NCBI GenBank assembly: GCA_904063045.1
Contig: CAJFCJ010000013.1
Location: 602,156-666,155 of the forward strand
From: Dimorphilus gyrociliatus
Lineage: Eukaryota > Animalia > Annelida
Reading direction: 5' to 3'
DNA length: 64,000 bases
In this document: piece after piece, positions 1-40,996 of the stretch
Numbering within the stretch: the first letter of the stretch is position 1
Layout: each line of letters begins with the position of its first letter
Program-made: the position numbers and the translations under genes
The notes under the pieces: model-generated
What the model saw: the letters and a program-made list of their open reading frames with translations, nothing else
Told to the model about the DNA's origin: nothing
Databases searched by the model: none

Positions 1-204
1 TTACACCTCAATAAAAGTATTTGTTGAAAGCAATAGGAATGTTGTATGAATTGCATTCTTACTTTTTTTTTTTAAATTACGATCAAATAGTTTTAATAGA
101 AAAATATCACTGGTTACCTACGCCTACCTGGAACTAACGAAACTGTTGTTTTCAATATGGCGGATTGTATACAAAAAAGATCTAACGTCTTCCGTTACAT
201 TTAA
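1..204 (+). CDS. Possible 3' end of an upstream gene (partial, unknown product)
   Basis: Open frame YTSIKVFVESNRNV, then a gtatga donor and ttttaatag acceptor at 99, then exon 100-204 KNITGYLRLPGTNETVVFNMADCIQKRSNVFRYI*. No recognisable motif. Confidence 0.3.
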
Positions 205-2131: not shown

Positions 2132-5100
2132 CATATACAGTAAAAAGTAAATGTCAATCTCCTTTAGTCTATAAAAAAACCGTAAATTCTCTTTAAAGAG
2201 AAAGATTAGTACCACATTTTAACGCTATTTCGTTTTTACTTTAGGAGAGTATTGCATGAGAAAGGCTTATTGAACGAATAGTAAGTAAAAGTTTTGTCCT
2301 GTTTTTTATGAAAATATGAAAATATATAGGTTTGTTTGCAATGTATTATTTTACAGTACTCGTAATCGTCAGCCACCTGTGATGAATGACGGATCGAATC
2401 CTTATCATGGCCTAGATCAGAAGTGAGTTCTGTTCGCTTTAAGGTTAATGTTAATGACTTATGGTATACTTTAAGGGCATCAAGAGACTACGATCAGTCG
2501 GGGCAGTTGTCTAGTCATTATTCAGCTGGCGAAGACGATTCGTACTTGGGCTCCCCTTACGGTCAACCTGATCATCAACGACTTGCCGCTGCGTATAACG
2601 ATAATGGCAGAGAACACATTGCTGAAGATAGTAGACGTTACGACCCTGAAGACAGCAGGCGCTACGAATCTGAAGATAATAGACGTTACGCAGGTGACGA
2701 TAGTAGGCGCTATGAAGTTGACGATGGTCGACGTTACGAAACTGATGATGGCAGACGTTTCGAAGTTGACGATGGTAGACGTTACGAAACTGATGATGGC
2801 AGACGTTACGAGGCTAATGATAGTGTACGATATGAAGTTGACGAAGGTAGACGTTACGACGACGAGGAAGGTAGACGATTTGAGAGCGAAGAAAGTAGAA
2901 GATATGACGTGGATGATCGGCGATATAATACCGATGACAGGCGATATGATGCCGAAAATGCTAGGAGATACAATACTGAAGATAATGCTTATGGAAGGAA
3001 TAATAAGTACTATTCCCAGGACGTTGATGACAAATATGGGCAATATACTATGCAAGACAGACAGCAAGTATATCCGGAAGAAGACGAGAGACTACGACAC
3101 GAAGCTTATCGTGGTGGCTTAGAGAATCAATCAAAGAATATGCATTATAATGAAGACGCTCGAAACGGATCGTATGACGAACGGTTACCTGCCTACGGAT
3201 ACGATTCATCCATTGACAGGGCTCAAGCGGTTGCGGTTAGCAATTATTATAAGTCGGAATATGAAGGCGAGGAAAGTCCTTATGGAACCAGAGGGGTAAA
3301 TGGCCATGATCGTTACGAAGTTGAAGACGAATATCCCACTGGAGCTAAATTAAGCGAAACGTATCCAGAAGAAAATAACTACAGCCTCTCGGCTCGTGAT
3401 GCCCATCTTAAGAGAGTTCAGCCAGAACGTGACGTATATTTAGCGTCGGGTGGAAGTGGTGGTGGTGGTGAACCACTACCAAACAATTGGGCGGAACCCG
3501 AATATAATTCACAGAACTCTCATTGGTCATCAAACACGCCAAATCGATCTGCTCCTAATTTTCCTGGTTTGTATTTCATTATCATTTTACTATACTGACA
3601 TTGTAATTTTACAAGTACCAGCATGTGGTTGTTATTTGTATATTAGTTGGCATGTTTTTATTTTGGTTTTGTTTTTCTTTCTATTGAATTATAGCTGGAG
3701 AAGATAGCCGACTAGATAGATCTGAAGAAGAGACGCCACCGAAAGAAGGTGTTTAAAAATATTAATCTGTTTAGTTTTCCTTTGTCCATAATTCTCTACT
3801 AATCTATTCAAGTTTATGTGCAAAAAATCAGTTTCATATTACTGAATTAATGCTTTTATTAGATTTAGATTATTTTAAGTAATTCTTTAAACTCTAAACT
3901 AAATTTGTTAAAGACTTCCATATTTAATTATACTTGTTAATCAGTTGCTTTTAATTGTTATTATAAAATAGGCTACCCAAATGAATCGTGGAGGAATCCA
4001 GATTTATCTGAAGTTATAAACTTTCTTCGATATCCTTCTGATGTAATAAAAGCTAACGCGGCAGCCTATTTACAACATTTAACATTCAATGACGACGATA
4101 TGAAAGGAAAGACAAGAAGTTTAGGTGGAATTAAGGCTCTTGTTGAATTAGCTAATAGCAATACAAACGATTTGGTAAGAGCTGCGTGCGGAGCTTTGAG
4201 AAATTTATGCTATGGAAGGAAACATGATGAAAATAAACGAGAGATAAAAAAATACGGCGGCCTATCCGTAATGGATAAAATACTACAGAGGTCTGTTTTA
4301 TTAACTACTTTTAATTTATTTTTTTGCATTATTTTTACAGATAAAAATCCGTAAATAGTCATTTTATTAATTAGATTTTTTCATTTTATTCTATTTATAG
4401 GATTGATGATGTTGACATAAGGGAAATGGTCACTGGTATTTTATGGAATATGAGCTCTTGCGATGAAATAAAAAGACCCATCATTGACGAAGTTTTACAA
4501 ACTTTGGTCGATGAGATAATCGTCCCTCATTCCCCGGATAATAATAATGGTCATTACTCACAAGTCTCTTGGACAACAGTTTTTAGAAATGCATCGGGAA
4601 CACTGAGGAATATATCGTCTGATGGTATATACGCAAGGACAAGATTAAGAGAATGTGACAATTTGATAATTAGCCTAATAAATATACTGGGAGCAGCCGT
4701 AGGCCTGAATGACATAGATAATAAGAACGTTGAGAATTGCGTCTGCATCCTTCGAAATTTATCGTTTGCTTGCCAAGAAGTTGTTGATCCCGAGTATAAT
4801 AGGAGAAAGAAACAAGCGCCACAAGCACCATCATCGCCTACAGCAACTGGTTGTTTTGGTTCGAAAAAGAAGACGAACAATAATAATTCTAATAATCGAC
4901 CCCCACCGAACATACCAGTAACAGGTGTTAAAGGAAGCGTTCAATTGTTGTGGCATCCAACAACACTCAGGACACTTTTAAATATGATAAAAGAGTGTAC
5001 TAATCCAGCTACTCTCGAAGCTGGTGTTGGTGTAATACAAAATTTGGCTGCTTGCCAATGGAGTATAAGCGTTGAGTACAGGACATTAGTAAGATATGAA

Positions 5101-6023: not shown

Positions 6024-6852
6024 AAAGTTTTTCCCCCTATATATAGATATATATATATATACACTGTATATCGTATTGAATATTTTTTTTGTATTCTACA
6101 CACATCTCTATCTCTGTCATTTCTTTTTTTAGCAACATATCATACGGGCTGCTGTGATGAGATTAGCGAAAATATCTTTTTCAATTAACGTCTGTGATGA
6201 AGTTTTCAGCAATAATTTCGCATGTTTAGCATAATAACTATTACAAAAGAAAAGTTTATCTATATACACATATATAGGTGTACTGTATATATTAACGTAC
6301 ACATACGCTAATATAGAGGTATATACAGTATCAACTATAATATAGTATGTAAGCTGAAAAAATGTAGTTTTTCCACAATTTTTAGAAAAAAAAAATCAGA
6401 AAAAAATTTTTTATACACAATTATGTAAGAAAAATTTTTGTACACCTTATCAACCTTTTCATTTATTGGATGGGTAATAACAAAACCATGTATGCTCTTT
6501 AAAAACTGCTGACTTGTTTTCTTGTGTACAAAGTGTATATATATATAAAATATAATAAATTTATATATATTATATATACATATATATCTATATATAATAT
6601 ATGCAAATATATGAAATTTGTATTGATATACAGTATATATTTTTTATGTTTATTTATATATGCTGTATTGATCAACATAACGGATATATTTTATTTTCTA
6701 TTTTTCTAAAAAATTTTTGCAATCATTCTCATATTCGTTTGTTCCTGCAATCTCTGCTTTTTATTAAGTACCATACTCGAAAATTTTGTAAAAGCAAATT
6801 TAATACCATGTTTTGTTTTTTTTTAAATACACATTATTTACATGGTAAAATA

Positions 6853-9296
6853 TCAATCGACTTCTTCCTGCAATTCACTTGATTTCTTAAGGCCTTCATT
6901 ATTCATAAAATGTATTATTTTTTCGACACATGCATCTTGATAGTCGTGAATCCATCTAACATGAAAAATTTATAATTAGATATTGAAAGAGAATAAATTG
7001 AATGTATGAATATAATTAAACTAATTAAGGAAGAAGAGATTTATAGCAATTACCGTATACTATTAAATGAACAAATTGCCTTCATGTCGGAAGGCAGGCA
7101 TTCCGGTTGTGGCCATTTGAAATTCTCTTCGATTGGTATGATGTTTCGGCCAGCATCTATGGCAGCCGTAATTTCACGGTGAATCCAATCTTGATTACAG
7201 TCGTCTCCTATGCAACGTTCTAAAGCCTCGGGCGTCAGTATAAGTAAAAAGTGTCGAGTACCTCGGACGCTATCCAATAGCTTTTCGTCAAATTTGCCAG
7301 CCTGCAATTTTTCAATATCTAAGAAAACTCTATAACCGCGAACTTGTAGGTGAACCTTTAGTAGGCTGTATGAAGAGAAAATAAGTGATAAGTATAATGC
7401 AGTTGTAATAATAATAAAATACCTAGCGAGTAGAGAACCTCCCTTCCTTCGATAGCTGATAAACACGTCGTATTTATTCTCTGAATCTTGATTATCGATA
7501 GAGAGCATTGAAAATGAGGATCTACGCTTCAAAGAGTCCATTATCTTTAATCGGTCTATACCATTTGTTATATGGCAATCTCGATAAAGGTGCTCGTCAG
7601 TTAACATGCATAAAGTCTGCTTATCAACGCCACTTTGGTCCATTTGATAAGCGTAGACAGCTAAATCTTCTGATATACTTTTTAACCATTCTTCTAATAA
7701 TAAGGCGTTTCCTTCTAATTCATTTCGGATTTTTAAATCTTTGAGAGCTTTTAGAAATTTAATACGAGCGAAACAGCTGTTCATCCCCAGGCCATCTCGC
7801 AACATATCGTCGTCTAATCTCAATAATAAATCACCGTCGATCTTTTCCTTCTCGAACAACTCAATAAATTCAGAAAATCCAGTTAATTGTAGCCATTGTA
7901 CCACGTTGCAAGTACTCCAATAGGCTACCTTATTTGGTAGGAGATTTGGAACATCCCGTACTCCAACCGCTTCGAGGGCTTGGAGAGCAAACTTAGCAGC
8001 TAATTTATTACAGCTACCAGCTACTTTTTTTAAGGCAGGTATAGCTCCAATTTTTTCGATAACCTTTATGTCATCACTTTTGCGGACAAGTATAGCTGCT
8101 TCTACAGCGAAGTGGAAGGCAGCTAAACTTTGAGCTTCCGGTCGTTGGCAGGTTAATAAGGGAACTAGCTTTCTCATCCATTCATCTGTGTGACCGTGTA
8201 TGTGAGCAGTATCAGAAAAAGCGAAGCCGGACGGATCGTGCGTCTCTATAAATCCCTGTACGAGTTCTAGCGTACCGGACTCTTTCATAACGGGGGAAAA
8301 GGGATGGGATGCAGCTAGGGTTTCAATGGCCAAAAAGGCATAATAGCGGATCGAGTCATCATCGTTAAAAGCCAATGGAAACAACCAGTTGGGTACCCGT
8401 AGTTCTATCATCCGATTTTTTATCGAATTATCACCATACATTGCCAGATTAGCGAAGGCTTTAGCGCAATGACGTAGGGTCATTGTATTTGACGTCTTAC
8501 AAGCGTTTAAAAGTGTGTTTAGACCGCCGCATTGAACCAGTTTTGCGCAGGTTAGCTCTGAATGCTTGAATAAATGCTCCAATATTCCTGTACATGGTGT
8601 TTGTAGCAGTGTATCAGTATTTGATGCTGCAGTTAATTCAACAACTGCATTGAGGCCCTCGTCAACTATGACGTCACAGTTTTTAAGAGTCATACTCTGT
8701 TCAAGTAGTTTAGCAGCGTGCAAGCGGCTACCGGCCGATTGAGAACAGAGTTTTAATAAAATATGCACTCCGCCTGAAGTCCGAAGGGCATCGCACAGAC
8801 CGTGGGCAAATTCTTTTCCTACGATTGGTAGTGACCAGGCCTCAACTAGAATATCGTGCATCTCTTCTAAGCACCCTACCCTTTCTGTATCTGACCTAGC
8901 ATCTCTAACTAGAAGAACATTCTTTTTCCAAATTGGTAATGTATTTCTTAAAACAACTTGTACGTTTGGAGAGGCAGGATTATAATTTGCAAACATGCTG
9001 GCTGTTCTTCGAGAAATACAGCCAGATATTTCTTCTTTTTGTTTAATAGTCTGCAAACTGACCTTGAACTTTGGCGGTCCCTCTTCCTCTGACCTCGAAA
9101 GGTCCCAGTACACTCTAGAGTGCTGTGAAACATTATCAGTTGACTTAATGTTTTTATTATCCAAATGCAGTTCCGATTGAGATCTTTGCCAAGAATAAGA
9201 CGTAGTCGATTCTTTTTCTGTGTTCTTCCTTCCCATTTTATTCTCAGAATTTGTTCGGTGAAGCGAAGTCGGCGGTTCGTTCGATTCGTCGTCCAT
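6853..9296 (-). CDS. SARM1: SARM1 (ARM-SAM-SAM-TIR NAD+ hydrolase)
   Basis: Exons 9296-7423, 7365-7054, 6955-6853. ARM region (LRHCAKAFANLAMYG, WLFPLAFNDDDSIRYYA); two SAM domains (WSTCNVVQWL...IDGDLLLRL); TIR DVFISYRR...DIEKLQAGKFDEKL...DWIHREI with the catalytic Glu; last exon WIHDYQDACVEKIIHFM. Confidence 0.96.
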
Positions 9297-9454
9297 TTCT
9301 GCCGCTTCGTCTGCTCACATGCGATCGCAGCGACATCTGTGTTTTGAAACAAATACGTAGATAATAGTAACGCGAAGCCTTTAATACCAGTAAATCGATA
9401 ATTTATTGGTGTTTACGAGACTTCATTTTTTGTAATAATTTATTCACATATAAT

Positions 9455-11578
9455 CTATTTTATTGACGTTTTTTCAAATTTATCAATAATATTTTTAATT
9501 ATTACATCATGTCTCCGTTTTGAACTTCTCAACACCGGAGTGCTTCCGGAAGAGTTTGAACTTTGGCTTTCGGTTTCCGCTTCAGACGAAGTGGTTGTTT
9601 CTGGAGTATCAGGTGGAGGTTTAGGAAGTCTACGTATACTTCTAGGCGGACGCGGACGAACTGCAATACGTTTCATAAATCCGTACTGCTGTAATCGGTC
9701 CTATTAATTGAAATGTTAGTATGATTTTTTTAAAATAATTCCATTAATTATTATATCCTAATCTATTTACTTCAAATTCACTTTCCCACTGGATCGTATT
9801 TCGGCTTAGTTCGTCTGTCCAATCAAGTTTCGCAGCCAACTGCGCAACCGTATCAATTAAGTCACCTTTTTTAGTTCAAAAGCCAAATTTTAAGTATAAG
9901 AAAATTAGAAAAAAAAAGATTCCTACCACCAACAAATACATCATTCAAGCGTCCTTTTTTAGCAAATGGTCCAACAGCTTTCTTATTAAAAAGACATCTA
10001 GGCACGAAAAACTTGGCACGATCAATAATATTCGAGAATGGTTCAACCTGAAAGTTTTCGTAATAAAGAAAATGATATTAGAGAGAAATAGACAAATTAT
10101 ATATATATATATATATATTCGTGCCTGGAGCGAAGTTCCCATGATAAGAACCAAATCTGCGAATTTCATATCCGACACATACGAATAGAATTTGCTTGTT
10201 AGGTCCTCTCCAAAAAACACTACATCCGGCTTTACTAATCCCTTTTGAAAACAAATAACATCACTTTAGAAATGAATAAAAATGAAAAAAAGAAATAAAC
10301 TCATAAATATTTACGTTGCATCGGCGATTGGAACATCTGGGAATCTTATTGCTAAATATACTGTCCTATATAGGAGAAATATTTTAGTTTGAAATTTCAT
10401 TAATAAAAACTTAAAATAATCGGAAAGAAGTCCTACTTTACCTTGACATCTCCGGGAGATTGGGGAGATCTACAACGAGTACAGCTAGCTGTCTCAAATG
10501 TACCGTGAGCTTCGACGAGTTTACTATTTGGTATTCCACTTACTGCAATAGATTAGTTGTAATTATTATGGTAAAATTTTGCATATTTAGTAAGTTGATA
10601 TTACATTTTTCTAAGCCATCGATATTTTGTGTATAAACACGATGCAATAAATGTTTCTCATGCAGCAAACGAATAAAATAATGAACACTATTTGGTTTAT
10701 GCTTAACAGACGGATAAAGATCTTTAGCTAATGTGTAGAAAGGTCTAGGATTTGTACGAAAATAGTCCATGTCGAATATAGCTTCCGGATAGGGGATGTT
10801 GAATTTTTGCAAATTATAATAAAGTCCTGTCTTAGGTGATCTGTAAAAACAAAAAAAAGGCAAACGATTAAATGACAGGTACTGTAAGCAAATTGATGTA
10901 AAAGAAACTCTAGTGAATGTAAAAGGAGCTAATTACCTAAAATCAGGAATTCCAGAAGCCGTACTGACGCCCGCTCCAATAACCACGACGATATTTGTAG
11001 CTTGACCACGTGCAATTAGATTGGCAATATCTTCAAAAGTGTTACACTTTACGGTTCTCGGTTTGGAACTACTAAATAAAAAAAAATATCGATTGTATTA
11101 GAAGATTCAAAATAAAAAAAAAACAAATCCATATAGAATTGGAAAGAAGAAAAAAAATCAATTTCATTTTACCCAACATCTAAACGGCCAAAGCCGTCTA
11201 AAGCGGCACTCTTTCCTTTAGAGGCGGATCTTAAAGTTGCCCATCTATCATTTTGGAGGGTTTCGGAAGACTTAGCACGAATTTTTGCTATATACAGGAA
11301 AAACATAAAATTATAACTGGAAATGTGGTGAAAAAATAATAAATTAAACAAAAATTATTTAAATATACTTGTTATTCTAGGCATAACTTTGTGGTCAAAA
11401 ATACTGTTGGAGTGATGTGAACAAACTGTGTAGATAGTAATATTAATAAATATTAGTGACAGAATCCATTTTTACCAATTAAGGTTTGAATAAATGCTAA
11501 AGTTTTTGAACGTTGATTAATTTTGCGAGTTATCAACCCTCCTCCATATTTGTTACGCTTAGCAGCGAAAACTTGCAT
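9455..11578 (-). CDS. SIRT3: Class I sirtuin, SIRT3-like NAD+-dependent deacetylase
   Basis: Spliced motifs [75 protein letters not shown]. Basic N-terminus ([25 protein letters not shown]) is compatible with mitochondrial targeting. Start codon is inferred. Confidence 0.88.
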
Positions 11579-14500
11579 TTTCACAGAGGTCAGCACCTTA
11601 TTGGAAATATCGATATCGATATCGATATCGGGTTGTACTAATAAGCGGTTAGAGATAGGTTTTTGCAAACTTTATAATTAGTTGAAAAAGATTAATATTT
11701 GTTAATATTTTATTAGTAGGTGTATATTGTTAGTGGTGTTTGGGAGCCTAGAGCATGGGATATGAGAGGAAATTAGCGAATGTAATTGCGAGGTATAATC
11801 TGCCATTCCTCGACAAAGTATGAATTAAATACTTTTTTTATACACTAAGTGCATATAATAGCTCGCTTATATATTAATAATACTTACTGAGTTGGTTTTT
11901 GACAAAAATGCGGATATTTCTCGACGAAAAGAAGCAATTTTTCTCTGCAAAGTGTTCAATAATTTCACCCGACCATGTGATTTTTCGAAAAGGCCTTATT
12001 AGCGATACCCGGCCGGCTTCTTAGCCAATGAACGATGCTTTAACAACGGTCAGGCCTGACCAATCAATTATTGGTTTTATAAAATTATTTCTTCGCAGAT
12101 AATTTTGAAAATAATACAAATACTAATTTATCAAAAAATGAAACATATTTACATTTTTTTCGATGTAAACATATTATTAAAAAATTGCAAATAATTTAAA
12201 GAAACTGTTTACATCAACTTTAGTAAATGTAAGTGAAAAAAAAAATAAACAATAAAAAGTCATAAAAATATTAATGATAAAAATTTCAGAAGATGGATAC
12301 ATAGATTTACAAAAAATAAAACAAAACAAGGAAGATAAATTGAAAGATTATCGTATAGAAAATATACTTAAATCAATCTTTTGAAGTAATAACTGGTAAC
12401 AAACAGCTAATTATATAGCGCAATTATAACAAGGATAAAACAACAGATGGGGTTGGTTGTTCATATCAAATACCTACTGAAAAAGGACAAATGACGACTG
12501 AAACTTCCCTTTAAGTTTCTTATGAAGTATAAATCACTAAATTAATCTAAGTCTTGTATACTGAATAGATTGATAAGAATTTGTTTCTATTCTTTTAAAA
12601 TTGGATGATCCAATTAAACTCTTACTAGTTCTGTTATATTATTCTCTGATATCCAATTTTCTTCCATCCCTCTCCTTAATCCTACTTACTTTATTTATAT
12701 GAGTCTAGACAGTTTTACATGAGAAGTTTGAGAGGAAATGTGACAATTATCGGCGGTTTTTTTTTATTATTAATATAAATGCACCATTTTTTTAAAATGC
12801 TAACTAAAGGATTTAATAGAAAGAAAGAAAGACTAAGAATTCTTGTTAAGTAAGCGTATGGAGAAATAAAGAACGCTTTATGTAACATTTTTATTATTAT
12901 TATAAATAAATCTCTTTTTCTCCTTCTCCTACTCCCTTTCTTTCTCTCCCACTCTCTCAGTCAATTCTAATATATCTTTCTTTTTTTTCTTTTTTAAATA
13001 TAGAGTTTTCTCGTAACTATTCCTTAATAATGATAGAAAAACATATTTTACCTACTAAATTAATACGTTGACATTAGCATTTTAGAATGATACAACAAGA
13101 TTAAGGAAAAGGTAATTTAAAATGTATGATTAAAAAAAGACTAGATTTTGGACTGAAAACAAAAATATATAAGTGTGAAAAGAAGGAAAAAATCAGTTTT
13201 TTTTATTTAATAAAAAAAATAACACCCAACTTTTACTATTAAAACATCTTCTACTGTTCCTCTAGGCAATTCGTATAAGGTAAATGTATAGTTGTATAAG
13301 GTAATCCTAGAATAGATGTCGTTATATATATACGAATATATATATACCAACGGGTTACGTGATAAACCTCTCTACATTACTTCACTAACGCTTAACGTTT
13401 AATTCAATGTGCAATAATTTCTACCTAAGGGAGAATATAGAATAGACGAAAAAGAGTCTCTTCAAATGAGCGTTTAGGCCTATGGGAACAAAGCATCTTA
13501 TCAATACAATTAATTATTTCTTTCATCTAACTGGATGTATTTATGACTCAACATCAAAATTTATTCCATATAATTATTATCTTATTTAATAGGCTTTAGG
13601 AATCGACTGTTAAATCCAAATTTGCATATAAAGTATAAAACGTATACGTGTATTATTATAAACTAACAAAAAACATATGATATAGACTTAATATTTATTA
13701 CATTCAAAATGGAAAAGAGAAACAGCTATTGATAAGAATCAATAAGAAACTGAAATAGTAAGTAATTTTTACCGGAAAAGAGCATTTTATACAAGTTCAT
13801 TACATATTGTTGCTTTATTTAGAATTGTTGCAAGTTATGGTCTATTAAACGTCTATTTATATAACAATAAAAATTTGTATATATTATGGTAAATGCAGTT
13901 GTTTATTACAGCTTTTTGTGTACTTTATTTTCAATTCCTAGGGTCGTAGGTTTTCGTATCTTGTTTTTTTTTGTTTTTTAAAAACCAATAGATAACCTCT
14001 ATCTTGTTTTTATAGAGATAGATTATTTTATTATCATATTCTCTTTTGCATATTCTTTTCTTCTTCTTCTTCTTCTCTTCTTATTCCTTCTCTTTCCTTT
14101 CGCTATATATTCTTAATATATTCAATGACGTTTTAGAATGTATTATACATTTATAATAGGGTTTTTATTGCTTTAATATTTTAATAGTTTTAATAGAAAC
14201 AATTAATAACAGTTACATATTTTTGTCGTTGTCCTTTAATTATGATCAACTTTTTTTATTGACTCGAGTTCTATTAGTATATTACTCGAGAAAAGAATTA
14301 AAAAAATACAAACTTTCAACCAATCAGCACTTAGCTCCGGAAAATGGATAAATAGCGCGTCAACTGCAAGTCAGGATTATTTGCTTTGTTAGAACGTCAC
14401 CGACAAAGGTATCAGCTCGACTATAGTCTTTTTTTCTAAAAGAAAACTTCTACAAAATCTTTTCAATTTGAAGAAATATCGCATCTTTTCAACTCGAATG

Positions 14501-14937
14501 TAAGTTTTTTAACTATATTTTCATATCCCTATCATATTTTACTATCAATTTAAATAGTTATTTAAAATAGACGCTTTTATTCTATTTCTCCGCTAAATCG
14601 TTTTACTCACTCGTCTATTGTATGGCTGAAAATTAATATTTTTTTTTTACCCTGGACCAGAATTATTCTCTTGTTAAAACAAAATTTATTTTTTGTTTTT
14701 TTTTTTAAAAAAACAAAAAATAAATTAAATAAAAAAATCATTTTTTATTATCTAAGCGAAAACAATTTTAGAGAAAGATTGTTAATGCAAAAGAGTATTA
14801 AACAATATCCAGGCAAGTGTAGACACTTTTCCAAGTTTGTCATATAAAGCTTTTGAAAAGAGAAGATATTTCTTTTTTTTTTTTTTTTGTTTCAAATATC
14901 TACTGTTGTATTATATCCCTGGCTGTTTTGTGATAAT

Positions 14938-14978
<41 letters not shown>
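14938..14978. repeat. (CT)n microsatellite
   Basis: About 20 uninterrupted CT units. Further (CT)n/(GA)n runs near 15296-15345, 28835-28870, 40518-40541 and 44569-44601. Confidence 0.95.
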
Positions 14979-14983
<5 letters not shown>

Positions 14984-15111
14984 ATCTATCTGCCTGTCTG
15001 TCCATTTATCTCCTTTATAACTTTACATTTGTTCACTATGTATCTCTTACTTATTTTCTTATAAATTGTTTTAATTCTTATCTTTTCTTTCTCTTCTCAT
15101 CTACAGAAATC

Positions 15112-16426
15112 ATGGAAGGAAACAATGAAAAAGTAAATTCAACTGTGAATATGGTAAATTATAAATAAAATAAAAGAATATTGACGTTTATTATAAGTAT
15201 ATATATATTTTAAAATCAACAGTCTCCATTCCAATTACCCGACGCAAGCTATCCAAACACTCCTAGAGAATTTGCTACATTTATGGTAATAAACCTTTTC
15301 TCTCTCTCTCTCTCTCTCTCTTCCTCTCTCTCTCTCTCTCTCTCTTTTCTCTATCAATTCTATTCATTAATAGATGGTAAGAAACATTCATCACTAATCA
15401 TGAATGTTACAAAAAAAATGATCTAAGCAGAAATGTCATACATCTATTTATAGCCTATATAATACATTATACATAGTTTTGTCAGTATATGTATGCATTA
15501 ATGTTTTTATAATATTGTGGACTTAGAACTCGGGTAATGACGAAATTATTGCTGGACGAAGCATATCTGAATTGGGATTGCACGACGAGAACGAAATAAT
15601 CAAGGAAGATGATACGGATGTTGAAAGTACGGATAAAGAGTGGCCGGAAGAAAATCATAATGATAGCGACGAAACGAAAGTAAAAAAAAAATATTAATCA
15701 TTTTTTATACATTTTATATTGATCATTTTCCTTTTTTCCTATGATACTAGGCTAATTCGAGACGCCGTTCCTCATTCATAAATAGAGTAGTATTACTATT
15801 CCAATAATATTTCCCTATCCGATAAATATCATGTTTACTATTATTCAATTTCAGATGCCCAGATTCTTTAGGAATATATTCCCCTGCTTAGCCGGAGAGG
15901 ATTCGGTAAGTTTTTATATATCACTTCCTTTTCTTTCTTATGAACTTGATGAATAGGTCACTTTTTTAATTCTCTCTTTTCTATTTTTTCTTTTTTTATG
16001 TCCATCTTCTGTCGAGAATAGAAGGAATCGAAATTTGATTCTGAATCGAAAAATTTTAAATCTACGCAACAATCGAATAGTACTTCAAAACTTTATGATG
16101 ATGGTGAATCTCAGCTTTGTCCAGATTTAAGACAAAAGGTTATTTTCTTACCGGAGGATGGAAATCAATCGGGAACGGAAAGTGTTCAATCAAATTTTGC
16201 AAAGCCGTCCGCTTCCGGCGAGAACGTTCATGATAAATCGGCTGCTGCTGAAGAAAGTTTTATTTGGGATACGAATGAACATAACGATCAGGACACTGAT
16301 TTGGAAAGTGAGGGGGAAAGTTATAAATGTTAGGGAAATTGCAACTTAAGTTTATAAAATTATATAATAAAATATATTTATTTATTACCAACAGCTGAGG
16401 ACATGACAATTTCTGATGCTGATTGA
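15112..16426 (+). CDS. Orphan acidic low-complexity protein, multi-exon
   Basis: Chain of small in-frame exons with consensus splice sites: MEGNNEKVNSTVNM / SPFQLPDASYPNTPREFATFM / NSGNDEIIAG...DETK / ANSRRRSSFINR / MPRFFRNIFPCLAGEDS / KESKF...RQKVIFLPEDG...SYK / last exon ending EDMTISDAD*. No known domain recognised. Confidence 0.65.
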
Positions 16427-16638
16427 GATTGTCTGTCGCCCGGATATGAATGAATCATCAGATAATTGAAAAAAAAAAACAAAAGGTGGGATGGGAAAAT
16501 TAGGGGTATCAGAAATAGTTGAAGATAAGCAAATATATTAGGAGTGAATGTATATGAGTTAAAGAAGAATGTATTCTAGCTCTCTCTCTCTCTCTTTATA
16601 TTTCGTTTGTTTTAGCATGTATACGTTAATATTCAAGA

Positions 16639-16669
<31 letters not shown>

Positions 16670-19409
16670 GTATATGTAATCGTTAATGATAATATGTAAT
16701 AATTATTGATGTTATTGTATTTATTTGTATTTATATACGTATTAGTATATATATTTATAAGTGCAGGATAATAAGAGTTTGTTACAATTTAAAATGTTTC
16801 TTTTTGACGTTTATATGAATGTTAAAGAAAGGAGATTTTTATTATCTAAAAAACGAATAAATTACATTCTATCCCACTGATAAGCTTGTCCTAAACTTTT
16901 AATGCTAAATTAATACCTAATTAATTTATTTCTTATATATTTTTCATCTATTTCCATATTCTTCTCTTTTTGTTTCGTTAGGTGAATTTTTTCTATTCGG
17001 CTTAATTGTTGTTACATTCTTCAATCTAATTAATCTCATCTATAGGAAGAGGGGATTTATAATGAAACAATAGTTTTAATCAAAAATTAAAAGAAATACC
17101 ATAGTATTTTGATGGAAGAGATAGAGATGTAGAGAATATTATCATTATTATATAATAACAAATGTTTATTACTAATATTTTATTTATTAATGTAGGTTAG
17201 TTAAATTCGATAATTAGCCTAATAGATTGAATGTTATTTTCTTAAAGCTTTGAATAAGGAAAACTATATAAATTAAAGAGCTCAACAGCAGTTGTTAATA
17301 TTTATTAAGATAGAACAATCTCCCTCCCTTTCCGCTAACTTTTAACAATAAATAGAACAGAATATTTATTTTAAATTGTAAAGGAACAAACAAACCCAAA
17401 TATCGCTATACAAATCAAAACAAACGCTTTCCTAAGAAGTACATCAAAACGTACTTACACGTTAGAATTGATTAAACGCCGTTATAATATGTAATATACA
17501 AAAAAAAAGGAACTTTCTGTAAGTTTATTTATAGATTATTACGAGTTCAATGACTGATAATTGGAAAAAAATAGTACTGTATATTAGATATGTTTAATTA
17601 GTATTCATTAAATTTCTGTTGTAATGTAGTTTCTCTTCTTTCTTTCTTGCCGGTCAGTTTGTAGCACATAATGTATGTACAGTTTATAATGTAATACTAT
17701 ATAATAACTGTATATACGCGCCCATCCTTCCTTATAACCGTTTAAAGGGATGTTTTTTTTTTCTTTTTACTCCTGTATAGGATCATATGTCGACTTATCG
17801 TCGTCAAGATTGAAAAGTACCTCTCCGTAGATTTTTTCTATGTAACTGTCCATTAAATTTTTCAAGATTTTATTTGCATATCCTTACGGTAACCTTTTCA
17901 GGCAGTAGGATAACTCAATATTGAGACTTTCAAACACCGTCAATCTTGTTATTATGTGTAATTTTAAAAAATTATTACAGAAAATGCCCAAAATCACTCT
18001 TAAACGCCGGAAAATATTGTGTTTCCAGTTGAAAATGCCATTCCAAAGATCTGGAATAGGAAGACAAGAGTACATAGTTTATGAGAACGGGATAACTTTT
18101 CTAGTTATTGAACTTCAAGTTGACTGCAGACACAAAAACGAACTATAAGAGCATAAATCCAGTAAAAAGAACCAATTTAAACTGACAAGGAAAAAAGTTC
18201 TCTTCCTTCCTCCACATTTCATATGCAATCAAACTAGTTTGTAATAGATGTCGTATTGCGGAAGATTTAAAATAGTGAACCATCTCTTTTTTGAACAAAC
18301 TGTATAACTTACCATTGTAAAGTGTGCAGTTGTTAAGACTTATTTGCAGCTTCAACTTAGTTTATACAGTATAATGTTTATAGTATTGTACTCTTTACAG
18401 CTGACTTAAAGGAAGAATGCGTGCTAATTTCTCGTTTAACGCTTCTGACACACTATACCACTTTCGAAATCTATCATAATTTTTTTTTAATTCGCGCTAT
18501 GAACATTTTGTAGAATTATTTAACGTAGAGATGCCTATAAAAATGAATGCTGAATTCTATCTCGTCAAACTTCACTAGGAATCTATGTAAATATGATAAT
18601 TTCAATCTAATTTAATCAAATCAAAACACTTTTCCGAGTTTTTCCTTTTTTTATTGAACGCAAAAAAACAAAGCTTGCAAAAAAACGAAGATCTAAACAA
18701 AATTTTAAATCCCAACACCAAAAAAAATATACCAAGGTTTTTACGATTAAAGTGATTTCTTAAGTCTCATATACGATAAATGTTTAAGCCTCTTGGGCTA
18801 ACAAAAAAAATATGTCAATGTTAGATTTTTTCAGCGAAAAGAGAGTATGCTCAATAGTTGGTTCGTTTATATTCTTACAGTAGAAGAAATTGGTTTTAAA
18901 TGCCCATTATCGCGTTTCGCGTCTTTCCAAATAATATTACATAATATTACCATTTGTGAAACAATACAATTTTACCCTGCACCATAGCAAATAAATCCGT
19001 CAAAGGTATAAGATAACATATTACAAGATTTTTTTCAAGAAATGATCTAATAGCAGCGAAAAAGATCACAAAAATATTAATGAGCCGCAAAAAAAATAGG
19101 AAAAAAAAATACAACTGAGAAAATAAGCCTTTTTTAACGTTGAAAGTTATTCGGTTTCGTTGTTGTACCTTTTGTTGAATAGTTTCCTTAAAAAATTTTT
19201 AAAATGAAGATAAAATCTGCACTATTTTTTTTCCAATGTCCGAAAGGGCCAGACGCACCAATCGTATTTCGATATTTAGAAAAAAAACTCATCCCAATCT
19301 CGTTTCATGATCATATACATTTGCATTTGATCATACACAAAATGTTAAGTTAACATTTCGTCATACGCAAAGCTGCTATTTAACAATAGCCTTTGCCTTA
19401 CTCCTCCTA

Positions 19410-19518
19410 GGTTCCGTTAGCCGTCCTGTCAGGCTCCACCGGGGTCGCCAACCCCCGTTCGTCATTCAGCCAAGACGTTCCCACCCCTGCACCACGATGA
19501 GGTGGAACCATGCAGGGG
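19410..19518 (-). ncRNA. HDV-like (nested double pseudoknot) self-cleaving ribozyme, copy B
   Basis: Minus strand: P1 CCCCUGC/GCAGGGG; J1/2 AU; P2 GGUUCC/GGAACC; P3 ACC/GGU; L3 UCAUCGU; P1.1 CA/UG; P4 CGUCUUG/CAGGACG with inner hairpin; J4/2 GCUAAC with predicted catalytic C at 19420. Predicted cleavage 5' of 19518. Confidence 0.85.
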
Positions 19519-20300
19519 AACTTGCTGTTGCGTATCATTCTCTGGTATTTCTACAGACTAATACTGGGGAAGTTTCAATATCTTCAGATGTTGTTTCCTT
19601 CTTCATCGTTTGATATAGGATTTAAGTTTAATGGCTTTTCAAATATCACTAAAAAATTGAAAGATTTAGTTTTAAAAGCCCTTATAAATTATACTACTCT
19701 ACTTTCAAAGAAAATTCTGACGAGCTCAGTTTTCAAAAAATATATTGGTGTTTTATTTTAATAGTTCCTAGGACTTATATAACTTTGACGGCTTACTACT
19801 GTGTTAACCTTAATACTCAATATTGAAAATGAAACTCACCCTTTATTTCACCCAAAATTCAAAATGGCCGAAAGCCTTTCCTCAAACCACGTGGTCCAAC
19901 CACTTCTGAAATAAAGACAATCGCTACAATAAGTTTTCCACTCTCACCTGAAAGAAGAGAAAGTATACATATAAGTCCATATGAATAATTAAAGATACCT
20001 AAAATTTTTGTTTATATATAAGTTTCTGAACTTACCACTTATAACTTCGAAAATATGGCGCTGGGCGTGCGAAAAACACGTGCTTGGCGTATTCTTGGCT
20101 GACAAGTTTCTGGCGCTTAAATTGAAATTTCTGCAAAAAGAACGTCAGTGTTTACTTAAAATAACCATGAATTACACTTAGAATCAAGGGGGCAGATTCA
20201 AATATGTAGTTAAAAAAAAATTAGTACTTACTTCCAAAAACGTTTCGTAAACTGCTTTGCAGTGTTTCAACACAACCAAATAGAACAACTTTAAGTGCCT
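19410..20300 (-). ncRNA. Candidate spliced long non-coding transcript hosting ribozyme B
   Basis: Minus-strand donors GTAAGT (20231), GTAAGT (20035) and GTGAGT (19839), with acceptors at 20131, 19948 and 19551. No long spliced ORF. CCAAT-like and TTTGGCGC-like promoter motifs near 20430-20460. Confidence 0.45.
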
Positions 20301-21989
20301 CAGTTAAAAAACCTCACTCATTTTCTCTACTCTTTTCTCTTCTCAAGTCACTTTTTCGTTGGTTCCACGTTGACCTCGTTCCAAATGACAGAACCGGGCG
20401 TGGAAATTAATAATTTCGCACTTAATACCACCACGATCATTGGATAAGTTTTGGCGCAAATTTTTAAAAATTTGAACTTAATTACCCCCTATTATCACCA
20501 GTGTTTTCCGTTTTTTTTTCTAAAAACATTTCTTAGAAATGACTACGTTTTGTTTATTTTCACTTTCCACTAATATATACCACTTCAAATAACAGGCTCT
20601 AGTGTTCTATCCACCATTCTTCACACTACTGCTCTGTTTCTCTCCTTGAGCTTCTTGTTATATTATGAACTATCCAAACGGTAAATACAATAATTTACGT
20701 TCAGTATATAGCTTCATTTGCAAATTGTTTTAATGACGAAAAGACATGTAAAGCGATAAGATAATATCTAATCAAACAAAAAAGTACGAAGAGAAGGAAA
20801 GACAGAAAGACATTAAAGATGAACATTAGTGTTGTGTTCTTTCAATTGTTGTCTTAAGAATAGTAGAGAATTTGTGACTGGAAACGATTACCTTACTAGT
20901 TTCGTCCTTCTTTTCATAAAATACTCTATTATTTTGCAGTACAATACATCGTATCGTCTTTTTATTCTTATTAAAAGCTTTATTTAGTATTAGTTGTTTT
21001 GTTGGATTAAATACAGAAAACTGACGGTTGGTCTTTATATTTAATAATTTTATAGAAAAATCGCTTTCTCTCTTCGACTACATTCAGTATATCGTCTCAT
21101 TAAGTTTTCTACTAACCTACTAAAAACAGCACTAATGCTACAATAGCAAATACTATTAATATTACGGCGTCTCTTTTAAGATTCAACGCTTTTATTTTCC
21201 TGCTATTGTACATGTCTAGACGTTATAGAATGAGTAAACGAAAAGGCGAATGAACTCGTAAATAGAAGAGTTAGTTGAAAAAAAAAAGAGACGTCTTCGT
21301 CCTTCTATACACTCTTTTTGTAGATTTTCAGTGAATTTATCTCTCATAAACCAAACGATGATGTTGAACGTCCTTCGTAAAATTCGTCATTGTACATATT
21401 GTAGTATAATTTCTATTCAGGAAAAAAGAGAAACAAACGATAAACGTCGATTTTTTTTTATCAATTAATATTAGATATTTTTAAAGATCTAATTTTATTC
21501 TCCTAATCTCCTTCTTTCTTATTCGTTTTACTTAATATGCACTTTGTTTTTAGATTACTTATTAATTCGCTATCAGTTTACATACATTTTTACTTGAATT
21601 TCCTCTGAGATACTTTACAAAGTTGTCTTTTCACTGTCTATATCTAGTGAATAGTTGAAAACAAAAAAAGACGGCCGAATACAGGATATCAACCTTTGAA
21701 CAGGAAATAACTGAAACAATGACACATATGAAGGTATGCCTGTGGAGTAAGGCCGTTTTACGAGCTGATAGGATTTGCGCACATTTGATTTAACTCTAAC
21801 TAAGCTCTATTCTTAATTGTTAGTGATAGAAAGAAGAATATATAGGAGATATCAGGGAAAGGATCACGAAAACGAATCAGTAAGTTTGTGAGGAAATTCA
21901 GTGCTTAAATGTGAGAACCTGGTGAATGTTTATACCATCCTATTTGATTATTAAAAGGAGTAAGATCACTTTCATAGACACATATTTTG

Positions 21990-32406: not shown

Positions 32407-34100
32407 TGAGGGCAATGACCAAATAAAAAAAATCATCCTATTTTACTTTCATTCTTTCTATAGTTAACATTGTCTCCAAACGTTGACCCTTTGTATAATT
32501 TTAACTATAAAAACCAAACAATTAAGGTTTGGTTTTAAATACCAAAAAGTATCACAGTTGCTCCCGTCAACTGCTGCTCTGTCGAAGCCTTTCTCAATCG
32601 ATCTATCTCTCTTCCTATCTTCTTTTTAAGGAGTTTTCATACAATATTCAAATATTCATTAGACGGATTAGAATATATTGTATAATCGAAAAATCAAGAA
32701 CACAACAAGGAAACTAATCGACTTATCAGCATCATGCAACACGATTGGAGTATGAAAATGGAATTAGGAGATAGATACTACGACTGGAATACATTTGATA
32801 ATCTAAGAAAAGAACTTGAATCAACGGAAAGGATGTCATTCTTTCTCTTTTGTAAAATTACTAGACATATGAAACAATCCGACAAACTTATCGATAAAGC
32901 TCTCTTCGATATCGATAGATGCCAAAAAGGACACGAACAAGATAGGATCTTTCACTTTGTAAGGAAAGTAGTCGACGCCTTTAACTATTTGGGACATGAA
33001 CTTCATACAAGACTTTCTTTAACGATAGGGGTAAGAACAACGTTTGTTTCCTCTCAAAATCCCGCCATAGACCATCAATTGAGTAGAGAAACTGCCGAAA
33101 AACAATATTTCTCGCCTTCAACTCTTGCTTTTAACTATATCAGTTCTCTTTCTCTCTCTATCATTGCTTTTTTTTCAAGTCAAAATATGTCTCTATGAAA
33201 GTGATGTATATCTCTTTATTTAAAAATTAAACAGGATAATATTCTCCATCTTCTCGTCTATAAGCGCAGACTTTTCTCACTAAATTTTTGATCGGCTTTC
33301 GTGATTCTTCCCTGGAATTTTCCTATCCTTCTTTCTATTCGTAACAATTAAGAGTAGAGCTTAGAGTTAAATCGAATGTTTAAAAATCCTATAGTGGATT
33401 AATAAACATTGTAATAAAAATGTATATTAAATACCGGACACAATAAGAATAAGAAAAAAGATTAGAATTTTAATAATATCTAATGTTAATTGATAAAAAA
33501 GGTAAAATACTAATAATCGACGATTACGTTTGTTTTTCTTTTTTCCTGAATAGAAATTATACTACAATATGTACAATGACGAATTTTACGAAGGACGTTC
33601 AACATCATCGTTTGGTTTATGAGAGATAAATTCACTGAAAATCTACAAGAAGAGTGTATAGAAGGACGAAGACGTCTCTTTTTTTTTCAACTAACTCTTC
33701 TATTTACGAGTTCATTCGCCTTTTCGTTTACTCATTCTATAATGTCTAGACATCTAAAATAGCGGGGGAAAAAATAAAAGCGTTGAATCTTTAAAAAGCA
33801 GACGCCGTAACATTAATAGTATTTGCTATTGTAGCATTAGTGCTGTTTTTAGTAGGTTAGTAGAAAACTTAATGAGACGATATACTGAATGTAGTCGAAG
33901 AGAGAAAGCGATTTTTCTATAAAATTATTAAATATAAAGACCAACCGTCAGTTTTCTGTATTTAATCCAACAAAACAACTAATACTAAATAAAGCTTTTA
34001 ATAAGAACAAAGAGACGATACGATGTTGTGTACTGCAAAATAATAGAGTATTTTATGAAAAGAAGGACGAAACTGGTAAGGTAATCGTTTCCAGTCACAA
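32407..34100 (+). repeat. Right arm of inverted duplication (partner 20872-23348)
   Basis: Reverse-complement matches as listed for the left arm. The 619-bp core is 32567-33185. Confidence 0.95.
32734..33198 (+). CDS. Uncharacterised ORF, copy 2
   Basis: 154-aa ORF MQHDWSMKMELGDRYYDW..., identical to 22558..23016 up to the arm junction. Confidence 0.4.
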   Translation: MQHDWSMKMELGDRYYDWNTFDNLRKELESTERMSFFLFCKITRHMKQSDKLIDKALFDIDRCQKGHEQDRIFHFVRKVVDAFNYLGHELHTRLSLTIGVRTTFVSSQNPAIDHQLSRETAEKQYFSPSTLAFNYISSLSLSIIAFFSSQNMSL

Positions 34101-37100
34101 TTAAAACTTTACAACTGATATCTTCGCCTATATTACTTACTTCCACAGTTTATCTGTCTACGACGATATCCTATAACTCCCCTCCTATAAAAATAATTAT
34201 ACTCACATTCTGAAGACTACATGTACAATAGGGTTGAAGTTTGAATGAGATAAATATGACAGGCGATGAACCATTCGTCGTCAAAAGTATGTCTGCCGAG
34301 ACGATAGGGGTGCTAGCTGAAAGTGAAACGTTCAAAATGAGGTATTTCTGAGAAATCTTTAAAAAAAACAAAATATGGAAAGTTTTGGCAGTGTTTTTCA
34401 CAAACTTTTTGGAATGAATTCAAGCATATAAAGGGAATATACGAACTATCTATCATTCATCCAGAAAATGGTACAATAAATCGCCAAAAAGATGTAAACT
34501 ATTGACAATACATGATATTCATCGTGTACTCATTATTACTCTACAACATTTACATATAGTAAGTAACAATTTTTTTCTGGATGACGTAATTTAACGTTGA
34601 TAATAGTAATAATAATAATAATAATAATCATCATCATATGAAGATCGTTTAAACATGGATAACAATAGATGAAAACGTATATTTAGTTTTGCAAGTAGAT
34701 CATATTTTATTTTTATCTTATTGACATAAACAAGTAATAGAAAAAAATAGAGTAGCTTATTTGAGGGACAACAAAATAAAAAACTTGAATCAATATACTC
34801 GGATATTATTTGGAACAAAAACATGTTTTTGAGCGAATGACAAGACAATTTGAGCAATTGCAGTTTTTTTTTTCGTAATTTTTTATTAAGGTTAAAAAAC
34901 AGAGATGCTAAAAACGTTGTTCCGATTTTAGGGTTAAAGACAAAAGTCCTAGATCTGAAGGATTTCTAGTTGAACTCTCACAAAAGAAAGAGTCATAGAT
35001 AGATAAGAAAAAGAATACAAGATGTTGGTAAATTATAAAGAGAAGGAAAAACTGTTTCTTACAGATTGCTAATTATGAAGAAAACAGATTTTTTTTTATG
35101 CCACTTGCTCGCTTCCTGTTTTCCACTCCCTCTCACAATCTATTTAAAGAGATGCGCTATCTTGGGTAATATGTCAATTGTCTACCTATCAGCATTACAA
35201 ATTTGTAGTAACAGAAGCTTAACTTTTCTTCTATAAAGACTATTGAACTCTTGACGCTTTTAATTCGTGTATTATAGCTTTAATATTAAAAAAATCTTAT
35301 TATGTGAAACTATGATAAAATTTAACGTTAATTATTAATGAACTGTTTGTTTTTTAGTTAAATTTTGTGTTTTTCTTTAAAGAATCTTAAAAGAATCACT
35401 TATGATATACATATATATATATATAAATTATATATATATCAATCGTTATTTTATTATCATCTCTACTCATACTAGCTGTACAATATGAGTAGCGTCAATT
35501 AAAACTACTCTCCATTTGCCACAGACGTCATTCTTCTGGCAGGAGCTGAAACGCGAACACCACTTTATCTGAAGGAAAAAAAAGGTTCTTCCTCTCCCGA
35601 AGTGTACAATGTTCTTTGAAAAAAAAAACAGGTATGTAAAACATTTAAAAAAAAAATAAAGAACGTTTTATGGTATGTAAAATTTAAATTTTTTGTTAGG
35701 CACTTGTTTGAAGAAAGCCATTTGTAGAATGGATGAGAGGACAAGCGAAAGAATTACAAGAGCACAAATGACCAATTTTTTTCAACGTTTAAGAACGGTG
35801 TCGAGACAAAATAAAAGTTTTTCACCTTGAAGTAAGAAGTAACATACTATCTCTCGTATAGAAAATCAAATAGGTTATGTATGTATTATAAGCAATACTT
35901 TACCAAAACGAGCAATGACAATTGATTAATGGCTCTTCCTTTACATTTTAGGTTTAGCATTAGCAGATTTTAACTAGAAGTGATTTGGTAAAGATAATTG
36001 CTCGTTTCCAATTTCACATAAAGTATACTGGGTGGACAAAGGAAGAAATAAGAGTTTTAAAATTGTCGCCTTGAACATAAAAGCCTATAAGCCACCTTTG
36101 AGTTTGTTACATTCTTAGAAAAGCAATTGTAAGACTTTTGTCATAACTGAAAATTGAAAAGTACATGATGGAAATTTTGACATTTTACGGCACTCTTGTT
36201 ACTTTATGGCAGAAGAAATTTACCTTTGAGAAAAGTATTATTGCTTTAAAAGTAAATCGCTGCTTATAATTATTCTTTAGGATACAAGGAATTGATATAA
36301 TAGGTAACTGAATGTGTTTCAGGTGAACATTCTGTATATAGAAAGAGAATTTAAGCAAAACTATTTTCTGAGGAATTGAACTCTGGAAGGGTGAATGAAA
36401 GTTGATTTCTATACAGGGTATCGCTTATTAAATTAATGGCGAACTTAAATTACTTGAATAGTATCAAATTCGACTGCTTTAAAAACTCAAAAAAAAAGTT
36501 GACAACTAAGAAATTCCACGCGTGATTTAAAATTGTCAGTATTTTGAATTGAAGCTCTAATCTATGTAAAATAGCCAATATAAACGAGATTGACTTTTTG
36601 TTTTTACTCCCAAGGCAGGCAAAGAAAGAAATACCCTCGAATCAAATTCAATTAGGAGTTTATTGTTTGCTGATTTTGTAGAAGTAATTTACTATTGAAA
36701 AGGTTCTTACAACCTTGAAGAATTTGAGAAAAATTTTTAATTGTTTCATTGGATGTGGTTTCTATTGGTGATTTGATACTTTTCTAAACCGCAAACTCAT
36801 TTGAAACTGGTTTGTCGGTTATCCTTTAATATCATTTCTTAAAAAATCTATTTCATAAACTAGAAAAATTGAATGGAAATTTATTACATAGCCATACCGA
36901 TAGCATGGTGTATTTGTACATCTACAGGTCGTCTATAGGCTTGGTGTGAACTTTAAACCGACGATTCATTGTTACAAACAAGTTGTCAGTTGGCTAGGCA
37001 CAGCGAACTTGTCAGAAATTCAATAGAACAAATGATTAAAAGTTTTGTTATCTACAATTGTCATTAGACGAATTCAAATTTACGAATGAATACATATGAT

Positions 37101-37194
37101 GAATATCTGCAATTGGCTATTGGGTGCTGGATTTTTTTGTTCCATATAAATTGCCTATTTGCTTTCGGAAAAAGAATCAAAATTGAGTGCAAGT

Positions 37195-37292
37195 CCCTTG
37201 CATGGTCCCACCTCAACGTGGTGCAGGGGTGATAACGTCCTAATAAAGATCTGACTGGCAACTCTGGCAAGATTAGGACGGCTAACGGGACC
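37195..37292 (+). ncRNA. HDV-like self-cleaving ribozyme, copy A
   Basis: P1 CCCUUGC (37195-37201)/GCAGGGG (37223-37229); P2 GGUCCC (37204-37209)/GGGACC (37287-37292); P3 ACC/GGU; L3 UCAACGU; P1.1 CA/UG; P4 CGUCCUAAU (37236-37244)/AUUAGGACG (37272-37280); J4/2 GCUAAC with predicted catalytic C at 37282. Confidence 0.88.
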
Positions 37293-37459
37293 AAGGAGTA
37301 GTTTGAAGGTAGATGGAGGCCATTCAATAAACTCCTAAAGGATACTAAATAAGAATATAATGATGGAAAGTGTTGATGGTGATGAAATGATAGTCTGTAA
37401 ACGTAGAGGACATAAAGAAGTAGATATAAGAAATTGATGGAAAGAAGAGGAAAAAAAGA

Positions 37460-37650
37460 GGCAGTTGACGATAAAGGAGGAGAATAATGATGATGATAAA
37501 AGGAGGAGAATAGTGATGATAAAAGGAGGAGGATGTTGATGATATAGGAGGAGAATAATGATCATAAAAAGAGGATGATTTTGATGGTAAAGGAGGAGAA
37601 TAATGATGATAAAAGAAGAGGAGGATGGTGATGATGCTAAAAAGATGATG
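37460..37650 (+). repeat. Degenerate purine-rich minisatellite (about 21-24 nt unit, GATAAAAGGAGGAGAATAATGAT-like)
   Basis: About 7-8 imperfect tandem units. The minus-strand ORFs 37335..37565 and 37345..37722 are by-products of this repeat. Confidence 0.8.
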
Positions 37651-39538: not shown

Positions 39539-39574
<36 letters not shown>

Positions 39575-40957: not shown

Positions 40958-40996
40958 CCCCGCCTCCTTCCCCTCCCTGCCCCCCGTCCCCCGCCC
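40958..40996 (-). promoter_or_regulatory. GC-box / G-quadruplex-capable tract upstream of the tetraspanin gene
   Basis: Minus strand GGGCGGGGGACGGGGGGCAGGGAGGGGAAGGAGGCGGGG in AT-rich surroundings, about 1.3 kb upstream of the tetraspanin ATG. Putative 5'UTR splice sites lie at ~41831 and ~42130. Confidence 0.4.

Follow-up and report, generated by a model that had tools for sequence, protein, structure and literature searches.

The roles of HDV-like ribozymes outside viruses and retrotransposons are still largely open, and the locus described here poses the question in an annelid: what would a well-formed ribozyme of this type be doing in the very compact genome of Dimorphilus gyrociliatus? 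The motif type is well known but its setting here is unusual, and no literature linking HDV-like ribozymes with annelids was found. The whole stretch of DNA that we analysed, hereafter the window, spans 64 kb of the published assembly of this species, GCA_904063045.1 (PMC10735302); positions in the record CAJFCJ010000013.1 equal the window position plus 602,155.

Judged by its predicted fold, copy B is an HDV-like ribozyme with no part missing; it is of the C(+1) type, as in L1Tc, and the sequence bears out the position and strand given to it by a first-pass annotation made from the letters alone. Its elements, and its paralogue, are listed below, with index 1 of copy B set at base 19518 on the minus strand.

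19410 to 19518, minus strand: HDV-like ribozyme copy B, 109 nt (sequence; full-length RF00094 alignment; all pairs standard)
19518 to 19519, minus strand: predicted self-cleavage site between U19519 (−1) and C19518 (+1), placed from the 5′ edge of P1
19512 to 19518 with 19484 to 19490, minus strand: P1, CCCCUGC/GCAGGGG, index 1–7/29–35, 7/7 pairs
Index 8–9, minus strand: J1/2, AU
19504 to 19509 with 19410 to 19415, minus strand: P2, GGUUCC/GGAACC, index 10–15/104–109, duplex energy −8.0 kcal/mol
19491 to 19503, minus strand: P3, ACC/GGU, index 16–18/26–28, enclosing L3
19494 to 19500, minus strand: L3, UCAUCGU, index 19–25
19498 to 19499 with 19482 to 19483, minus strand: P1.1, C20–G37 and A21–U36, index 20–21/36–37
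19422 to 19477, minus strand: P4, CGUC...GACG, index 42–97, 56 nt, a long three-part helix forming a peripheral domain (constrained fold)
19416 to 19421, minus strand: J4/2, GCUAAC, index 98–103, with the equivalent of the catalytic cytosine (C75) at 19420 (RF00094 consensus alignment)
37195 to 37292, plus strand: HDV-like ribozyme copy A, 98 nt, paralogue of B (pattern search; RF00094 alignment; pairs standard)

The order of P1, P2, P3, P1.1 and P4 in copy B is that of the canonical nested double pseudoknot, with a P1 of 7 bp and a P3 of 3 bp. The L3 pattern U C.. C G. lies under the 3-bp P3 in both copies (UCAUCGU in B, UCAACGU in A), and nucleotides 2 and 3 of this loop form P1.1 with the two bases that follow P1. 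A different P1.1 register, pairing U19 with base 38, was dropped for the canonical one given by the covariance-model alignment. The catalytic cytosine falls in J4/2, just 5′ of the 3′ strand of P2, at 37282 in A and 19420 in B, where it had also been placed by the first-pass annotation; here GGCUAAC of copy B aligns with GGCuAAu of the RF00094 consensus. Where the classical fold has a G.U wobble next to the cut, at the foot of P1, both copies carry C1–G35, which departs from the canonical pattern. The wobble is not universal: L1TcRz, which is active in vitro, also has a P1 that starts with C (PMC3185411; PMC4035085). Energetically, the nested HDV fold with P2 comes to about −44.6 kcal/mol against a minimum free energy (MFE) of −43.1 for B, and to −35.6 against −29.7 for A. 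Unconstrained MFE folding finds P1, P3 and P4 for A and not for B, whose MFE structure is a different fold with a z-score of only −0.6, a test that is uninformative for a pseudoknot.

Comparison of the two copies indicates how this fold has been kept. In A and B alike, each of the 23 pairs that make up P1, P2, P3, P1.1 and the P4 base is standard, against only 36–48% of cells in control registers slid by 1 to 3 columns. At P2 column 13/106, C–G in A (GGUCCC/GGGACC) is matched by U–A in B (GGUUCC/GGAACC), a true compensatory double change, while one-sided changes between U.G and C–G occur at P1 column 4/32 (a wobble in A, C–G in B) and at P4 column 46/93. L3 differs at a single column, one that is weakly conserved in the Rfam consensus, and both pairs of P1.1 are invariant. 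The shared topology, the compensatory P2 pair, the step from U.G to C–G in P1, the lone L3 difference and the unchanged P1.1 had all been noted in the first-pass annotation, and each is upheld by the alignment. With two sequences only, 240 of 500 shuffles reach the observed values, so that the comparison shows kept pairing and is not a covariation statistic.

The constraint on this core can nonetheless be set against the rest of the unit. Between A and B, 7 of 63 columns of the catalytic core differ, none of them breaking a pair or a conserved core base, whereas the downstream body differs at 324 of 723 positions (Fisher p = 3.8e-8); in distal P4, where indels also occur, 21 of 35 aligned columns differ. 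Three ribozyme positions (19441, 19432 and 19431), all in distal P4, are not the same in the strain sampled in RNA run X6 as in the window; at 19441 and 19432 a C to U change opposite G keeps the pair as G.U, and the third variant is unpaired. A core far better kept than the body, with no change that disrupts the fold, supports selection on the predicted ribozyme fold, and we infer that purifying selection may have kept both cores intact. The earlier suggestion of selection on catalysis is supported indirectly, and RNA contigs fit cleavage in vivo.

Beyond the ribozymes, the two units share a further stretch, whose features are as follows.

18640 to 19409, minus strand: AU-rich non-coding body of the predicted 3′ cleavage product, homologous to the A body (RNA contigs 18639–19435 and 18720–19508; homology)
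18650 to 18655, minus strand: AATAAA poly(A) signal of B, with the tail after 18639/18640 (sequence; in run X2, a loose run of 8 T on the plus strand before 18639)
37293 to 38545, plus strand: body of copy A, a GA-rich tandem-repeat expansion (about 37300–37950) followed by a stretch homologous to the B body
38522 to 38527, plus strand: AATAAA of the copy A unit

About 600 nt downstream are colinear between the copies (A 37952–38520, B 19241–18680), with a local score of 51 against maxima of 22–24 in 100 shuffles and 142 real control segments, an identity of about 55%, and exact blocks of 13, 12 and 11 nt. The homology runs from the cleavage site to the common AATAAA. Upstream of the cut sites none is seen, local alignment scores lying within those of shuffles at 40, 100 and 300 nt, and there is none past the poly(A) signal. 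The description of the flanks as unalignable in the first-pass annotation is therefore right for the upstream side and wrong for the downstream side. Because the homology spans cleavage site to poly(A) signal, the duplicated unit is the ribozyme together with its body and not the ribozyme alone, and the ribozyme stands at the exact 5′ end of this repeated unit. A six-frame tblastn comparison of A with B, made as a coding test of the shared body, matched only the ribozyme itself; none of the small ORFs of the two bodies is conserved, and Rfam returned nothing credible on either, a mir-1323 match being rejected at 26.8 against 98.

Two local peculiarities of these units deserve mention. Between ribozyme A and the conserved body lie GA-rich tandem repeats of about 45–71 nt (37444–37623, more widely about 37300–37950) that are absent from B. 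Directly 5′ of both predicted cut sites stands the hexamer GCAAGU (19519–19525; 37189–37194), the sole common element upstream, which may be left over from homology at the DNA level, may reflect a context favoured at −1, or may allow alternative pairing with the 5′ strand of P1; in copy A, GCAAG is complementary to CUUGC of that strand.

How the ribozyme is embedded in RNA was followed in Logan contigs, which carry one depth each and show where RNA lies but not exact ends or levels; four runs from three studies were placed on 16700–20870. They delineate the following parts upstream of the predicted cut.

20232 to 20431, minus strand: leader exon 1, with the transcript start at or upstream of 20431 (contigs to 20380 in run X3 and to 20431 in run X2)
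20034 to 20130, minus strand: leader exon 2 (joints in X2 and X3)
19840 to 19945, minus strand: leader exon 3 (joints 19648/19840 and 19945/20034, GT..AG)
19519 to 19648, minus strand: part of the terminal exon 5′ of the cleavage site, the last of the leader that would be discarded (X3 spliced contig; X2 contig 19490–19649)

Ribozyme B belongs to the last exon of a minus-strand transcript that is spliced, polyadenylated and non-coding. One spliced contig of X3 joins 20380–20232, 20130–20034, 19945–19840 and 19648–18654, and the stretches left out of it have GT..AG borders when read on the minus strand; in X2 an oligo-A tail follows 18639. No ORF longer than 43 aa is present in the spliced RNA of the copy B locus, and in the deposited annotation the intervals 22558–16426 and 33198–42341 are free of protein genes. 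The second of these, about 9 kb long, contains ribozyme unit A, and non-coding genes missing from the annotation are likely there. The last-intron junction lies at 19645/19836 in X6 and at 19648/19840 in X3, reflecting either alternative splicing or a strain difference. Run X9, from a different organism, holds 8% of the sampled words of 18600–20400 and may contain a conserved part of an orthologue.

Contig depth changes steeply along this transcript. In X2 the contig 18639–19435 has a depth of 1348 and three upstream contigs have depths of 9–13, one of them (19490–19649) bridging the cut site; in X5 depths of 6,700–19,000 extend as far as 19499, and the depth over 19500–20479 is zero; and in X6, a metatranscriptome, the contig 18720–19508 has a depth of 22 against 3.8 for the upstream spliced contig. 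In three studies, then, contigs 3′ of the ribozyme are about 6 to more than 100 times deeper than those upstream, and the steps fall within the ribozyme or at its 5′ edge, the contig breaks lying at 19435, at or before 19499, and at 19508 and not exactly at 19518. The deep contigs contain most of ribozyme B. This fits cleavage of the HDV type, since the ribozyme stays on the 3′ product and a leader without a tail would be lost, especially under poly(A) selection, while the single X3 contig across the cut site indicates that uncleaved precursor exists. As a whole, the depth pattern agrees with efficient self-cleavage in vivo, after which an abundant RNA headed by the ribozyme would remain.

These observations lead us to propose that copy B is probably a functional ribozyme which, within an ORF-less spliced transcript of Pol II type, makes an abundant 3′ RNA, with copy A as its paralogue. 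Minus-strand transcription would begin at about 20431 or upstream of that point, and the precursor would lose three short GT..AG introns by splicing. Once the last exon had been made, the ribozyme would fold into its double pseudoknot and cut between U19519 and C19518. The leader of about 530 nt, having no poly(A) tail, would be lost, whereas the 3′ product of about 880 nt would carry the ribozyme fold first and then the AU-rich non-coding body, polyadenylated after 18640. By the chemistry of the family, in which cutting leaves a 2′,3′-cyclic phosphate and a 5′-OH, this product would bear the 5′-OH, and it would build up to very high levels. Copy A would be a diverged paralogue of the whole unit, comprising ribozyme, body and poly(A) signal.

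That two GC-richer stretches merely look like HDV ribozymes is a thought prompted by the database scores. Rfam at its gathering threshold gives no match anywhere in the window; in permissive mode RF00094 (HDV_ribozyme) aligns both copies end to end at 33.9 bits (B) and 35.1 bits (A), with local E-values of 0.0035 and 0.0019, short of the gathering score of 50, and RF02682 gives 20.9 and 23.1 bits for the two copies against a gathering score of 44. Scaled to the window and 4227 families, the E-values become about 0.2 to 0.4 each. Chance would nevertheless have to produce two full-length matches with every defining element and all pairs in common, to place in both a 13-mer, GGCTAACGGRACC, that occurs twice against 0.01 expected, and to make the motif coincide with a step in RNA depth, which we consider scarcely credible. 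More plausible, though still unlikely, is that the abundant 0.9-kb RNA has its own transcription start near the ribozyme, from an internal promoter such as that proposed for Pr77 of L1Tc; the fold would then be a relic or would cut only a minor read-through fraction, a corollary that we hold to be just as improbable. A transcription start and a cleavage end look alike in contigs, so the same depth pattern would be expected, and in L1Tc the same 77 nt act as promoter and ribozyme (PMC3383444, PMC3185411). A relic sits poorly, however, with a fold that neither paralogue has lost and that has changed far less than the body; the precursor crossing the site is spliced and lies co-linear with the product, and a dedicated three-intron leader would be purposeless.

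The origin of the units is a separate matter, on which the preferred explanation overlaps in mechanism with a further reading and differs from it in origin and purpose. According to this further reading, which we rate as possible but rather doubtful, A and B descend as old copies from a non-autonomous non-LTR retroelement without an ORF, comparable to NARTc, SIDE or SIDER; equally doubtful is its corollary that the 5′ ribozyme frees the element RNA from a host transcript to which the leader exons, otherwise unrelated, belong. The limits of A/B homology are indeed those of a processed RNA, from cleavage site to poly(A) signal, the upstream sequence is co-transcribed, and such ribozymes are known most often from the 5′ ends of non-LTR elements or of derivatives that lack an ORF (PMC3185411, PMC4035085, PMC3774820). 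Yet the window offers no ORF for reverse transcriptase (RT) or EN and no partner element: downstream of B there is no ORF of at least 80 aa, and Pfam found no RT in the longer ORFs tested. Pattern search and covariance model alike recover only two copies in the window, a model built from A and B finding no third; neither target-site duplication nor encoded A-tail is seen; and no run, whether of RNA or of DNA, holds variant contigs of at least 90% likeness, which speaks against a young family. The genome is moreover poor in transposable elements (4.87%; PMC7854359), the hexamer GCAAGU is common to the sequence just 5′ of both cut sites, and the two copies flank an inverted duplication, just beyond its arms, in mirrored and colinear order. 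The first-pass alternative of independent insertions of an active element family may still hold but finds no RT ORF, target-site duplication or third copy in the window to sustain it, and the mirrored, colinear copies favour duplication at the DNA level.

That inverted duplication pairs 32408–34100 with 23348–20872 at a patchy 73–99% identity, carries paralogous ORFs of 152 and 154 aa without a Pfam family, and brackets single-copy genes of RPE65, Rogdi and TBCC/RING type. The ribozyme units point outward from it in mirrored, colinear order, separated from its arms by unalignable DNA of about 1.3 kb on the B side and 3.1 kb on the A side. The simplest account of the mirrored order would be that both units were carried along in an old inverted duplication at the DNA level; the inner arms would later have been homogenised, and of the remainder nothing but ribozyme and body could still be recognised. 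Another reading, which we hold to be possible though somewhat less likely than not, is that the units form a host (domesticated) lncRNA gene family, in which the ribozyme serves as a dedicated device for forming and protecting the 5′ end, the spliced leader is disposable, and two paralogues have preserved the arrangement since an ancient inverted duplication. With the same reserve, the leader would supply Pol II transcription, and the product of self-cleavage, cap-less, ribozyme-headed and polyadenylated, would rank among the most abundant transcripts of the animal.

Relatives were also sought beyond the window. A scan of viral contigs gave 0 matches. Three metagenome contigs hold HDV-like candidates in which the core formed by L3 and J4/2 is the same (L001:603–690, minus strand; L002:533–641, minus strand; L003:3218–3326, plus strand), L002 and L003 being near-identical contigs and L001 having P1 GAAUCAC/GUGAUUC and P2 AUACUUG/CAAGUAU. 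They were rejected as relatives of A and B: helices and bodies are unrelated, the A+B model gives them only 18 bits or no match, and they have no Rfam context. For the same reasons they are of no use for covariation within the A/B family. Elsewhere in the window, a single 748-aa ORF (7050–9296, minus strand) combines Armadillo, two SAM and TIR domains in a SARM1-like architecture, and a 24-nt period repeats ten times at 2598–2933 (plus strand) inside a 391-aa ORF (2423–3598) without a Pfam family.

Copy B thus provides a well-formed annelid example of an HDV-like ribozyme. The transcript evidence indicates that a non-coding RNA of very high abundance owes its 5′ end to this ribozyme, in an animal that is small and culturable and has a compact genome. 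Were the units decayed retroelements, they would be an ordinary addition to a known class. If the host lncRNA reading is true, they would represent a ribozyme-based route to stable, cap-less poly(A) RNA and a tractable system for asking what such RNAs do. The logic of such a route would be comparable to that of the snoRNA-capped SPA lncRNAs.

Among known systems, L1TcRz/Pr77 of L1Tc and the ORF-less NARTc of Trypanosoma cruzi come close in several respects, as judged from primer sequences and text published in PMC3185411. As in copy B, the first residues of P1 are C, including that at +1, where L1TcRz cleaves in vitro (PMC3185411; PMC4035085); the 3′ strand of P1 is G-rich, follows a GGU strand of P3 and is followed by U; P1.1 is short; and J4/2 contains GCUAA. 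In L1Tc and NARTc, as proposed for copy B, the ribozyme forms the 5′ terminus of a polyadenylated RNA and the sequence upstream of it is discarded, and an ORF-less version exists. Copy B differs in its host, an annelid and not a kinetoplastid, in a much longer P4 (56 nt), in a precursor with a spliced three-intron leader, and in that neither an autonomous partner nor a dispersed family is seen. Similarly, in the R2 ribozymes and R2 SIDE elements of insects the unit opens at its 5′ end with an HDV-like fold, which is transcribed together with host sequence lying upstream and is then freed from it by cutting itself (PMC3774820); in contrast to R2, copy B lies outside rDNA (the window has no rRNA matches), has no R2 ORF and is present in two diverged copies only.

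The genomic HDV ribozyme (RF00094) shares with copy B the double pseudoknot, a 7-bp P1, a 3-bp P3 and a 2-bp P1.1 in the same register, together with a J4/2 of GGCUAA type and an AUGGU lead into P2. Copy B departs from it in having C–G and not G.U at the base of P1, an L3 one nucleotide shorter and a far longer P4, and it is encoded in the DNA of an animal genome and scores under the RF00094 gathering cut-off. The mammalian CPEB3 ribozyme is HDV-like and, as is proposed for copy B, located inside a host Pol II transcript and kept by selection. But whereas CPEB3 resides in an intron of a protein-coding gene, copy B belongs to the final exon of a non-coding transcript and would stay on the abundant product.
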